Shown piece after piece: positions 9,207 to 47,216 of a stretch of 64,000 nt of DNA. Under the pieces are notes generated by a model, which saw only the letters and a program-made list of their open reading frames with translations, ran no database searches and was not told where the DNA came from. The position numbers were made by a program, and so were the translations under genes. Each line of letters opens with the position of its first letter. Position 1 is the stretch's first letter. Source of the stretch: Octopus sinensis (taxonomy: Eukaryota); contig NW_021835987.1 in assembly GCF_006345805.1 (NCBI RefSeq), positions 124,001 to 188,000 on the forward strand, read 5' to 3'.

Positions 9207-9253
9207 CTACCTCAGGCGGATGAATATGGCCATGAAGTCTGCTAATGCATAAC
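9207..9253 (-). CDS. Gene A coding exon 5 (terminal)
   Basis: TTGCAG acceptor; (G)YALADFMAIFIRLR-TAG. Spliced CDS 849 nt = 282 aa with no frameshift or internal stop. Confidence 0.85.
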
Positions 9254-9519
9254 CTGCAAGTAACAATAACAACATCAATAACAAAAGGAATTCAAATATA
9301 TCGTGGGAGGACTTTATAGGTGGTCACTCGAATTACTAGAAATGGCAGCCCAATCTCTGCATCGTTTTGTGGGTCGGTCACTGTTGGAACGCCTTTGAAT
9401 ATAAATCAGTTGAATCAAGGCTGATTGGCCGCTAAACAATAAGTACAAAATTAACATTTAGTACTACTACTCACAGTAAGACAAACGCACACAAACACAG
9501 AAGATACAATATCACTTAC

Positions 9520-9680
9520 CGTTGTTCCATACGACTTTCGATTTTGTATCAGAATAACGAATTAAAGGGTAGTATTCTGAATTTTCGTACTGACAGTCAA
9601 GTGGTCCCTCATTGATGGTCAACCAGCCTCTGTCCCCGTCACAATTATCATGTATTGTTATATAGAAGCGACGATTAAAC
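9520..9680 (-). CDS. Gene A coding exon 4
   Basis: Polypyrimidine-TAG acceptor, GTAAGT donor, 161 nt, phase 2->1; (K)FNRRFYITIHDNCDGDRGWLTINEGPLDCQYENSEYYPLIRYSDTKSKVVWNN. Confidence 0.88.
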
Positions 9681-9829
9681 CTAAGGAGTTAGAAAAAGAA
9701 AAAAAACTTGTTTGGGTTTCAGAATATGAAAATCTAAACTTCTAGAAAACATACCATTATGTCTGCTATATGCAGTTAAATCAATCAGAATTTAATTAAA
9801 ATAGACATCTGTGTATCATACTTAATGTA

Positions 9830-10235
9830 TAAACACACTCGCGATAGACTATTCACTGAAGTATTTTTCCTGAAATAGCATGTATTATGGATTTGCTGTC
9901 TATCGGATAGACACCGAAATTCGTTCCAGCAGCGGCCAGAGAGAGCAAAAGATGTTATTTCAGGACACACATATTGCAGTAACTGCCTGTCGAGAGTGTA
10001 ATATACGTTATGTATGCTACATAGATGTTAGATAAACACACTCGCGATAGACTATTCACTGAAGTATTTTTCTGAAATAGCATGTATTAATGGATTTGCT
10101 GTTATCGATGACAACAAAAAACCGAAATTCGTTCCAGCAGCGGCCAGGAAGCAAAAGATGTTATTTCAGGACACACATATTGCAGTAACTGCCCTGTCGA
10201 GAGTGTATATACGTTATGTATGCTACATAGATGTT
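9830..10235 (+). repeat. ~200-bp tandem duplication in gene A intron 3 (single copy in gene B, ~46390-46590)
   Basis: acactcgcgatagactattcactgaag...atagatgttaga occurs twice; the second copy has several 1-bp indels. Confidence 0.75.
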
Positions 10236-10879
10236 AGAATGGCAGTGGCAGCCCACAGGCCCGTCTATAGATTCCATTTCAAATGAGATCTATCTTACAC
10301 CAAATATGAGTTCGTAAGCACTCACATACATATAAACGACATATATACAGAAATACAGACATACGCAAACCCCCACTCTTACAGGCAGACACATATGCAC
10401 ACACATACATACACACACGCGCGCGGCAGATTTGTTGCAAAGTGAAAATGTAAGGAAAGGCAAAAGTACACACGAGCATACAATTTAGCAAAAATCTACA
10501 AAAACGCTCGAACATATAACGATATATTTCTTCCCGTGTTGAACATCTTAGCAAGCGCGCCAAGGCATGGAAATAAATATAATAGAATGTAATAATACTT
10601 AAAAGGAACAGAGACAAGTAAATATAATTATAGTATTCATTTTAAGGTGAATGTATATTTTCGTGTTTCGCACTTTAAAACATGCCTTTTGACGCGAAAG
10701 CCAGGAAACTACACAATTGGTTAAGAGAAAGCACGTGTGGTGTTGAAAATACAAAAATGTATGAGTAAGAGATAAAGAGTCTCTAGCAGCGGCAGTGGGG
10801 TTGCTAAATCAGTATTTCTGTTTTTGTTTTTTTTTTAATATCGGCGCAGGTGTGGTTGTGTGGTAAGTAGCTTGTTTAC

Positions 10880-44628: not shown

Positions 44629-44941
44629 GTATGTTTATATATTTTCTTTTCTTGTGACGTAGACATTGTCTTGTTATGTAGAGACTTATAGATTTAAAAT
44701 CACTTTTCGTTTGTCTCTCATATATTTCAACGCTAAACATTTAAACGCGAAACGTTCTGAAGACGAACAACGCCTTTTCAGGCTTTCAACATTATATCTT
44801 CATTTATTATCATATACAGAATTCAAATGCGAGCAAATATAGCTTCCGTCGCTAAAATTGAAATCTATCGAGCCTTCTGGATACTGCAGCACAGGTGATT
44901 TGTTGAGAACAATTTTTCTCTATCAGTCGAGATTAAATAAT

Positions 44942-45329
44942 GGATGGAAGCACTCCGTTGGTTACGACGACGAGGGTTCCGGTTGATCCGAATCAACGGA
45001 ACAGCCTGCTCGTGAAATTAACGTGTAAGTGGCTGAGCACTCCACAGACGCGTGTACCCTTAACGTAGTTCTCGGGGATATTGAGCGTGACGCAGAGAGT
45101 GACAAGGCCGGCCCTTTGAAATACAGGTACAACAGAAACAGGAAGTAAGAGTGTGAGAAGGTTGTGGTGAAAGAGTACAGCAGGGATCACCACCATCCCC
45201 TGCCGGAGCCTCGTGGAGCTTTTAGTGTTTTCGCTCAATAAACACTCACAACGCCCGGTCTGGGAATCGAAACCGCAATCCTATGACCGCGAGTCCGCTG
45301 CCCTAACCACTGGGCAATTGCGCCTCCAA
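44942..45329 (-). mobile_element. tRNA-derived SINE family 3, gene B-specific insertion
   Basis: 14-bp TSD CGAGATTAAATAAT at 44928-44941 and 45330-45343; empty site in gene A at ~13612; head GGAGGCGCAATTGCCCAGTGGTTAGG...TTCGATTCC. Confidence 0.85.
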
Positions 45330-46737
45330 CGAGATTAAATAATACTTGGCATGTGGATGCCAAAAGCTATTTTACTCTTTACTCTTTACTCTTTTGCTTG
45401 TTTCAGTCACTTGACTGCGGCCATGCTGGAGCACTACCTTTAATCGAGCAACTCGACCCCGGGACTTAATCTTTTGTAAGCCCAGTACTTATTCTATCGG
45501 TCTCTTTTGCCGAACCGCTAAGTAACGGGGACATAAACACACCAGCATCGGTTGTCAAGCAATGCTAGCGGGACAAACACAGACACACAAACACACACAC
45601 GCATATATATATATATATATATATATATACATACATATATACGACAGGCTTCTCTCAGTTTCCGTCTACCAAATCCACTTTCAAGGTTTTGGTCGGCCCG
45701 AGGCTATAGTAGAAAACACTTGCCATAGGTGCCATGTGGTTGGTACACAAGCTACTTACCACACAGCCACTCCTGCGCCGATGCTTTTCAAAAGAGACAG
45801 AAATACTGATTTAGCAACCCCGCTGCCGCTGCTAGAGACTCTTTATCTCTTACTAATACATTTCTGTATTTTCAACACCACACGTCTAAATGATATGCTT
45901 TCTCTTCACCAATTGTGTAGTTTCTTGGCTTTCGCGTCAAAAGGCATGTTTTAAAGTGCGAAACACGAAAATATACATTCACCTTAAAATGAATACTATT
46001 ATTAAATTTATTTGTCTCTGTTCCTTTTAAGTATTATTACATTCCATTATATTTATTTCACTTGGCGCTTTGCTAAGATGTTCAACACGGGAAAATATTA
46101 TCGTTTATATGTTCGAGCGTTTTGTAGATTTTTTGCTAAATTGTATGCCTCGTGTGTACTTTTGCCTTTCCTTACATTTTCACTTTTGCACAAATCTGCG
46201 CGCGCGTGTGTGTGTATGTATGTGTGTGCATATGTGTCTGCCTGTGAGTGTGCGTTTGCGTATGTCTGTATTTCTGTATATATGTCGTTTATATGTATGT
46301 GAGTGCTTACGAACTCATATTTGGTGTAAGATCGATCTCATTTGAAATGAAATCTATAGACGGGCCTGTGGGCTGCCACTGCACATTCTAACATATACGT
46401 AGCATACATAACGTATATACAATCTCGACAGGCCAGTTACTGCAATATTTGTGTCCTGAAATAACATCTTTTGCTCTCACTGGCCGCTGCTGGAAGGAAT
46501 TTCGGTGTCTATCCGATAGACAGCAAATCCATAATACATGCTATTTCAGGAAAAATACTTCAGTAAATAGTCTATCGCGAGTGTGTTTATACATTAAGTA
46601 TGATACCCAGATGGCTATTTTAATTAAATTCTGATTGATCTAACTGCATATAGCAGACATAATGGTATGTTTTCTAGAAGTTTAGATTTTCATATTCTGA
46701 AACACAAACAAGTTTTTTTCTTTTTCTATCTCCGTAG

Positions 46738-46898
46738 TCTTACACGTCGCTTCTATATAACAATACCTGGTAATTGTAACGGGGACAGTGGCTGGTTGGC
46801 CATCATTGAGGCGACAGGTGGCTGTCAGTGGGAAAAGTCAGATCACTACCCTTTAATTCGTTATTCTGATACAAAATCGAAAGTCATATGGAACAACG
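46738..46898 (+). CDS. Gene B coding exon 4
   Basis: CCGTAG/GTAAGT, 161 nt; (G)LTRRFYITIPGNCNGDSGWLAIIEATGGCQWEKSDHYPLIRYSDTKSKVIWNN. Confidence 0.88.
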
Positions 46899-47160
46899 GT
46901 AAGTGATATTGTATCTTCTGTGTGTGCGTTTGTCTTACTGTGAGTAGTAGTACTAAATGTTAATTTTGTACTTATTGTTTAGCGGCCAATCTGCCTTGAT
47001 TCAACTGATTTATATTCAAAGGCGTTCCAACAATGACCGACCCACAAAACGATGCAGAGATTCGGCTGCCATTTCTAGTAATTCGAGTGATCACGTATAA
47101 AGTACTCCCACGATATATTTCAATACCTTTGGTTGTTAATGTTGTTGTTGTTACTTGCAG

Positions 47161-47216
47161 GTTATGGATTAGCAGACTCCATGGCCATATTCATCCGCCT
47201 GAGGCAGCAGAACTAA
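47161..47216 (+). CDS. Gene B coding exon 5 (terminal)
   Basis: TTGCAG acceptor; (G)YGLADSMAIFIRLRQQN-TAA. Spliced CDS 858 nt = 285 aa, intact. Confidence 0.85.

Follow-up and report, generated by a model that had tools for sequence, protein, structure and literature searches.

A 64,000-nucleotide (nt) stretch of Octopus sinensis DNA (RefSeq assembly GCF_006345805.1, contig NW_021835987.1, positions 124,001–188,000; called the window here and numbered from its first letter) carries two paralogous genes, A and B, placed head-to-head in the arms of an inverted duplication (Table 1). Each has five exons and encodes a predicted secreted protein. The genes are young, with aligned non-coding DNA of the arms differing at 333 of 9226 sites (3.6%). 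Their exons differ more than this, and the excess of amino acid replacements is local rather than gene-wide, concentrated in a 49-codon hypervariable stretch (codons 205–253) that begins in exon 3 and continues into exon 4.

Both gene models were rebuilt independently. A motif scan and the open reading frame (ORF) listing placed exons 1, 3, 4, and 5; exon 2 of gene B was located by an exhaustive search of AG..GT candidates for the required length and phase, and gene A was modelled by mapping the exons of gene B onto the opposite arm. A single non-repetitive candidate in gene B had the required 179 nt and phase. All eight introns of the two genes are bounded by GT-AG, both coding sequences are open, and exon lengths are 298, 179, 164, 161, and 56 nt (47 nt for the last exon of A). 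The same five-exon structure was found in six RefSeq homologues, each mapped exactly onto its own locus. These models are the same as those of the original prediction, a description of the pair made from the sequence alone that gave ORFs of 282 and 285 amino acids (aa). The ORFs stand as intact, but their start codon was probably placed 11 codons too late. Both genes have another in-frame ATG 33 nt farther upstream (35625–35657 on the + strand in B, 20387–20419 on the - strand in A) and adds MSQFPFTCPAA, identical in the two. Because the RefSeq homologues begin at this upstream ATG, with a first exon of 331 nt (295 nt in P0010), the real products of B and A are probably 296 and 293 aa. Six cysteines are kept between A and B, and the sequons NYS, N[Q/K]T, and NTT and the core motifs RRFYITI, NCxGDxGWL, and YPLIRYSDTKSKV are present in both, as had been reported. 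The N-terminus was judged by eye to be a signal peptide, having a hydrophobic core followed by AFA and then QE.

Table 1. Features of the window. Coordinates are window positions; aa, amino acids.
Feature	Coordinates	Strand	Details
Left arm of inverted duplication, carries gene A	8119..21628		Self-blastn and repeat finder; 93–97.5% identity to right arm
Right arm of inverted duplication, carries gene B	34414..48273		Self-blastn and repeat finder
Spacer between the two gene heads	21629..34413		Further repeated intergenic modules
Gene A (A-type copy)	9207..20419	-	Exons 20089-20386, 16350-16528, 13919-14082, 9520-9680, 9207-9253; 282 aa, ends TAG; exact spliced ORF; with upstream ATG, exon 1 ends at 20419 and product is 293 aa
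Gene B (B-type copy)	35625..47216	+	Exons 35658-35955, 40962-41140, 44465-44628, 46738-46898, 47161-47216; 285 aa; with upstream ATG, exon 1 starts at 35625 and product is 296 aa
Exon-1 (PAN/Apple domain) patch, gene B	35811..35837	+	Codons 52-60, LECTGIALQ
Exon-1 patch, gene A	20207..20233	-	Codons 52-60, PECAFYALN
Hypervariable segment, gene B	46738..46855; 44600-44628	+	Exon-4 part (codons 215-253); exon-3 part (codons 205-214)
Hypervariable segment, gene A	9563..9680; 13919-13947	-	Exon-4 part; exon-3 part

A codon-by-codon comparison of A and B gave a table identical to that of the original prediction. There are 55 nt differences; 38 codons change the amino acid (9 in exon 1, 3 in exon 2, 6 in exon 3, 1 at the exon 3/4 junction, 17 in exon 4, and 2 in exon 5), three are purely synonymous (codons 12, 111, and 169), and the final change, TAG in A against CAG in B at codon 283, moves the stop by three codons. 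Exons differ at 55 of 858 sites (6.4%) versus 3.6% for non-coding DNA (binomial p = 4e-5), more than chance would give, and exon 4 differs at 22 of 161 sites (13.7%, p = 1e-7) between introns that differ by 4.5–5.5%. The whole-gene non-synonymous divergence (dN) of 0.070 is about twice the non-coding divergence of 0.036 (Fisher test of non-synonymous versus non-coding, p = 4e-5), and the synonymous divergence (dS), 0.03–0.04, equals the non-coding rate. Formal estimates of dN/dS (omega) were 1.71 by NG86, 2.46 by YN00, and 2.1 by maximum likelihood. The earlier use of the 38:3 codon ratio as a gauge of dN/dS therefore overstates it; replacements do exceed the neutral yardstick, as claimed, but the excess is neither extreme nor gene-wide, with whole-gene values of 1.7–2.5 that are borderline.

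Two segments, a 27-nt patch in exon 1 and the hypervariable stretch, hold 35 of the 55 differences. Coding sequence outside them differs at 19 of 684 sites (2.8%), slightly under the non-coding 3.6%. By region, omega is 1.07 in the PAN domain, 0.73 in exon 2, 0.82 in the first part of exon 3, and 3.8 in codons 205–253, the values of 0.7–1.1 outside the hypervariable stretch referring only to regions with any synonymous difference.

Genes A and B are also not just a pair. Their best protein matches are Octopus vulgaris models with 98–99% identity. About 50 further matches, named "uncharacterized," come from O. sinensis, O. bimaculoides, and O. vulgaris, and within each species most of them lie on a single chromosome. 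On O. vulgaris chromosome OX597841.1 we sampled two loci, L001 (429225–494606) and L002 (528829–612577), that match the window at 96–98% identity, short of a perfect match; none of three sampled stretches of this chromosome contained the window at ≥99% identity. The two loci hold at least eight further related copies, six of them young. Two more A-type copies (L1c1 and L1c2) carry the same early TAG, one of them without exon 1, which runs off the fetched locus. A B-type copy, L2c2 (L002 41417–49875), has no exon 2 and has lost about 3 kb of intron relative to the window. A third exon-4 type, C-type, is represented by L2c1 and by an orphan, inverted exon 4, L2x4 (L002 65551–65711). Two more distant paralogues are also present. 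All full copies recovered (A, B, L1c2, L1c3, and L2c1) are intact, with GT-AG splicing and the cysteines kept. All three A-type copies (A, L1c1, and L1c2) have the TAG (window 9207–9209) that cuts off the terminal QQN, and the early stop is for this reason a lineage marker of the A type, not an error.

The view of these genes as hidden needs a similar division. RefSeq lists about 40 members from O. sinensis and O. bimaculoides, each named "uncharacterized protein LOC...", so they are not hidden there. In O. vulgaris, the annotated proteins P0001 (450 aa, 45 kb) and P0005 (400 aa, 64 kb) are chimeras that join exons of adjacent copies, and the family is under-counted in that reference annotation as a consequence. 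The O. sinensis RefSeq family models span 101–243 kb and have several isoforms. Such cross-copy models reflect either misannotation of a repeat array or genuine splicing between copies.

Within codons 205–253, A and B have a dN of 0.242 and a dS of 0.064, and the stretch has diverged three to four times as much as the flanking introns. Each of the 17 differing codons in exon 4 is a replacement (P = 0.019). Comparisons among the three exon-4 types show 8.7–16.8% divergence in exon 4 and 1.6–5.5% in the introns on either side. B and L2c1 differ by 19 non-synonymous and no synonymous changes; in codons 205–253 alone, there are 24 non-synonymous versus 1.8 synonymous differences between A and B and 15 versus 0 between B and L2c1. 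Several exon-4 changes are blocks of adjacent bases, and the excess holds when mismatches ≤3 nt apart are merged into single events (9.2% versus 2.9%, p = 3e-4). Compared with L1c3 and the O. sinensis proteins P0002 and P0003, the A type appears to keep the older "GWLTINEGPLDCQY" state; the B/C lineage would have gained GWLAIIEA.G.CQW, with separate changes following in B and C at codons 214–231.

The exon-1 patch accounts for 10 of the 15 exon-1 differences between A and B, and both of its forms recur in other genes. In L010 (O. vulgaris, P0022) it matches A at 26 of 27 positions and B at 17, and outside the patch 219 of 271 positions match each gene. In O. sinensis P0011 it matches A at 19 of 27 and B at 25, with 213 and 214 of 271 positions matching A and B outside it. 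Since both forms recur in paralogues that are equally distant from A and B elsewhere (about 80% identity), at least one of them reached its present gene by short-tract exchange and not by ten substitutions. The 55 differences are consequently not 55 independent substitutions, as the earlier count implied: the exon-1 cluster is a shared patch, and some exon-4 changes are blocks. Exchange on a larger scale is seen in L1c3 (L001 41385–55281), an intact hybrid gene that resembles B at its 5' end and has diverged at its 3' end. Identity to B is 95–99.5% across its promoter, exon 1, and the initial 2 kb of intron 1 but only 75–83% in exons 3–4; it is the product of crossing-over inside the long first intron.

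Multi-sequence selection tests used a codon likelihood program of Goldman-Yang type, written for this analysis, and an alignment of ten genes from three species (six RefSeq genes mapped exactly to their loci and four O. vulgaris copies). For the ten genes, the single-ratio model M0 gave an omega of 0.59. The M1a/M2a comparison gave twice the log-likelihood difference (2ΔlnL) of 61 when branch lengths were kept fixed and 70.9 under full optimisation; M7/M8, the comparison proposed with the original prediction, was strongly positive (2ΔlnL = 73), and M8a/M8 gave 62. Between 7% and 10% of sites have an omega of 3.5–4.8, and about half have an omega of about 0.14. Selection is assigned to codon 56 and to a group of codons within 205–253, so that sites from both M2a and M8 fall in the hypervariable segment; M8 also flags codons 48 and 189. 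In a control without codons 52–60 and 205–253, the signal was gone (2ΔlnL = 2.7, p = 0.26). Among the eight young copies, M0 omega was 1.69 (p = 0.034 versus omega = 1), and M1a/M2a gave a 2ΔlnL of 67. Two marks of a positively selected family were thus found, a class of sites with omega > 1 and replacement divergence above the neutral yardstick of the same locus.

The proteins have two parts with different degrees of affinity to known folds. Pfam searches with the exon-4 peptides and the full A and B proteins returned only a weak PAN_3 match, at residues ~30–99 (E = 0.03–0.09, 13–14.5 bits, below the Pfam cut-off of 21.1). PAN_1 matched four of 15 relatives (best E = 1.7e-6), and a family profile compared with Protein Data Bank (PDB) sequences gave only marginal PAN matches, to HGF and MIC4 chains at E = 0.14–0.36. 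Structure models are those of the relatives P0002 and P0033, not of A and B themselves. The N-terminal part of the AlphaFold model of P0002, with a predicted local distance difference test score (pLDDT) of 50–77, matched the HGF N domain and AMA1 at a probability of 0.9–0.99 but an E value of 0.03–0.3. Residues ~30–99 may therefore be PAN/Apple-like, a weak assignment by sequence to which the modelled fold is supportive only.

The C-terminal domain of ~185 aa is modelled as beta-rich (pLDDT 81; predicted template modelling score, pTM, 0.82). Its model had no significant neighbour in PDB (best E = 0.23), and no Pfam family was found for it in the scanned members and relatives. An exhaustive profile search recovered 1228 cluster representatives at E ≤1e-3 in molluscs, echinoderms, hemichordates, and amphioxus, with carriers including the octopod Argonauta, the gastropods Haliotis, Pomacea, Elysia, and Batillaria, a scallop, a starfish, crinoids, and Ptychodera. 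The pattern WFS..L.SSPW.D...FSI.G...R.FYI...C..D.GWL.V.D...C is kept from amphioxus to octopus. Judged from these matches, the domain is an old one, spread across bilaterians, with no curated family or solved structure. In relatives it is fused to Sushi, PAN, EGF, C-type lectin, SUEL lectin, discoidin, WSC, TSP1, D8C, ZP, or coiled-coil partners, and one amphioxus protein (P0076, Branchiostoma, 1211 aa) has four tandem copies ahead of a ZP module. Because of these partners in other animals, the comparison suggests a module for extracellular binding. The selected positions map in the model mainly to loops before, between, and after the strands RFYITI and GWLxI that flank the invariant C227 and C243; a C227–C243 disulfide and spatial clustering of the selected sites are predicted on this basis.

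Several other identities for the C-terminal domain were considered and rejected. A fibrinogen-like fold, indicated by a first Foldseek run, was not confirmed by the single-domain model; globes of the fibrinogen-related domain (FReD) gave the highest template modelling (TM) scores, yet these were only 0.35–0.41, short of the 0.5 taken to mark a shared fold, with a root-mean-square deviation of 7.6–9 Å. No FReD match was found by Pfam in 40 scanned members and relatives, most of them even at an E cut-off of 1–10, and hhalign against the ficolin-2 FReD gave a probability of 0.5%, a lead-level value. The UniProt labels "FAMeT domain," "C-type lectin domain," "SLH domain," and "Fibrinogen C-terminal domain" were not reproduced by Pfam in the four labelled members. 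For the FAMeT label (farnesoic acid O-methyltransferase; O. bimaculoides isoform P0070), there was no Pfam family at E ≤5, and no relative matches Methyltransf_FA. A C-type lectin domain is present in P0083, a relative with several domains. DUF7922 partially matches one repeat of the amphioxus protein P0076, a match that the octopus proteins do not share. Literature searches by domain term, LOC number, XP accession, or UniProt accession turned up no account of the family, and none of six family accessions was present in a skin-mucus proteome supplement.

We favor, with a probability of about 0.6, diversifying selection on a loop-borne binding surface of a secreted, N-glycosylated family, helped by gene conversion and recombination. 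A and B belong to a recently amplified array, in part tandem and in part inverted, of an octopod-expanded family, each protein being predicted to consist of a signal peptide, a PAN/Apple-like module, and the beta-rich C-terminal domain. Most of the coding sequence would drift at about the neutral rate, and the 49-codon stretch, which would encode loops around a beta-hairpin bracketed by C227 and C243, would be driven apart by diversifying selection. New loop variants, some of them from multi-base block changes, would be retained for altering what the protein binds. Short-tract exchange and crossing-over would act as a second mechanism that shuffles ready-made variants such as the exon-1 patch. 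That the loop-coding stretch has changed faster than adjacent non-coding DNA suggests selection for new binding specificities.

Several points weigh against selection as the cause. The likelihood tests rest on our own code, ten sequences, and a single NJ (neighbor-joining) tree; the whole-gene M0 likelihood ratio test for the eight young copies is borderline (p = 0.034), as is the whole-gene Fisher test of non-synonymous versus synonymous differences between A and B (p = 0.09). Recombination and multi-nucleotide mutations inflate site-model tests, and both are demonstrably present here, in the exon-1 patch, in L1c3, and in codons 224–226. In these codons (window 46765–46773), B and L2c1 have CCTGGTAAT versus AATATTGTT, six changes in 9 nt that look as if one block had been replaced at once. 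Merging of mismatches ≤6 nt apart leaves the excess in the hypervariable stretch marginal (p = 0.07). Among distant paralogues, the stretch has an apparent dS of ~1.5, a saturated value from an uncertain alignment, and pairwise omega is below 1. Finally, the search for donors covered part of the array, and unsampled donors may exist, although 21 exon-4 sequences (one listed twice) taken from the window and ten loci, and the 53 family proteins from the first search, included none for the B-type or C-type loops.

The last point bears on gene conversion or mosaic import alone, under which the clustered differences are tracts from diverged paralogues and no selection has acted on A and B. The exon-1 patch is exactly such a tract, L1c3 is a hybrid, and the differences are strongly clustered. 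Tracts imported from distant paralogues (dS ≥0.4) should nevertheless bring synonymous differences with them, against the near absence of these in codons 205–253 in both the A-B and B-L2c1 comparisons. The sampled exon-4 sequences and proteins hold no donor, and import would have had to stop at the exon borders, between introns that are 95% identical, on three occasions. We consider import alone unlikely. Apparent dN could also be inflated, with no selection involved, by a mutational hotspot confined to exon 4 or by complex multi-nucleotide events there, such as those of error-prone repair; several codons do differ at two or three positions, as in the run at codons 224–226, and the excess is marginal after the 6-nt merging. 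Such a process should also raise the synonymous sites within the segment and the adjoining introns, and neither is elevated. Counting one event per codon still gives 17 of 17 amino acid changes, and the same positions hold many different residues across the family, so this explanation seems quite unlikely.

Relaxed constraint, with redundant duplicates decaying into pseudogenes, would agree with the omega of 0.7–1.1 outside the hot segments and with the broken members L2c2 and L2x4. Neutral decay cannot lift exon divergence above intron divergence (p = 4e-5), however, and five full copies have kept their ORFs, splice sites, cysteines, and sequons; about half of the family sites are at an omega of ~0.14. 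A variant in which recent conversion homogenised the introns around older exon divergence is opposed by the low dS, and we regard relaxed constraint as very unlikely. Assembly or consensus errors in a collapsed repeat would be a concern in any region this repetitive, the more so as the window is not identical to any sampled reference stretch. The A-type exon 4 is nevertheless found twice in L001 (2 of 161 positions from A) and the B-type in L002 (1 of 161 from B), which makes such errors extremely improbable.

Building on the preferred reading of diversifying selection, the array might be a germline-encoded, octopod-specific repertoire of soluble recognition proteins, with the disulfide-stapled loop pair as a hypervariable binding site diversified by selection, block mutations, and patch or exon shuffling. 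This extension is possible, though doubtful. If true, it would add a new invertebrate recognition scaffold beside FREPs, VCBPs, and C1q-domain proteins and give the first functional handle on an unnamed domain that extends from amphioxus to molluscs. Cephalopods are without adaptive immunity, and to our knowledge, few of their lineage-specific expansions have been examined for selection. The locus is a compact, testable case, with ~290-aa predicted soluble proteins, three natural loop variants on a near-identical backbone, and introns that serve as its own neutral yardstick. A further reason for interest is a widespread, apparently extracellular domain with neither a Pfam model nor a structure, whose variable loops suggest where its binding site may lie.

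Exons that diverge faster than introns are known from crotaline snake venom phospholipase A2 isozymes and from conotoxins. Like these, A and B are tandem young paralogues with introns and flanks more conserved than exons, and their replacements are concentrated at what would be surface or functional positions of a small secreted protein with disulfide bonds. Unlike them, the octopus genes have an unrelated fold and family and show acceleration in ~50 codons rather than in the whole mature protein. No match to a named toxin family was found in Pfam or PDB, and no literature on the family as a toxin was found. Lectin-like recognition families have expanded in molluscs, as in the C1q-domain and C-type lectin proteins of bivalves (PMC6835236, PMC10140915). 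The octopus family resembles these and the FREPs of Biomphalaria in its lineage-specific tandem expansion, its putative N-terminal adhesion module and C-terminal globular binding domain, and its predicted variable loops, and relatives of its C-terminal domain sit behind coiled coils or beside lectin domains. It differs in that this domain is not fibrinogen-related, C1q, or C-type lectin by sequence. Evolution of the MHC/KIR type combines diversifying selection with short-tract gene conversion among array members. The octopus genes likewise have ready-made patches common to diverged paralogues and a replacement excess at presumed contact residues, but their products would be soluble two-domain proteins rather than membrane receptors, and the comparison here is of paralogues, not alleles. 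Similarity to PAN/Apple proteins (the HGF N domain, the apple domains of plasminogen and prekallikrein, and AMA1/MIC4) consists of the weak PAN_3 and PAN_1 matches and the fold matches to HGF N and AMA1; A and B differ from them in scoring below the Pfam threshold, in having two cysteines versus the usual four to six, and in their partner domain.

The symmetry of the arms goes on outward, with 1.8–8.9 kb inverted relative to 55.3–62.7 kb. Examples of inverted repeat pairs are 22137–23674 and 29458–27935, 3023–6149 and 61510–58387, and 8119–8945 and 56158–55333. Positions 1–827 are a third copy of the 5' flank of the genes, and further gene copies are for this reason expected, and probably lie, just beyond both window ends. 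The window as a whole is roughly palindromic around a center at ~28 kb (blocks 1–827, 1236–6149, and 55333–62685), and positions 1–6149 form a direct-orientation repeat of the region upstream of gene A (20869–26479). A block at 48.4–55.3 kb interrupts the right arm only and contains retroelement-like ORF remnants, one of 315 aa with a YVDD-like motif (49277–50224) and one of 294 aa (51688–52572). Similar remnants lie at 31498–31914 and 38706–39386, with a 138-aa ORF weakly matching GIY-YIG and a 226-aa ORF weakly matching zf-RVT.

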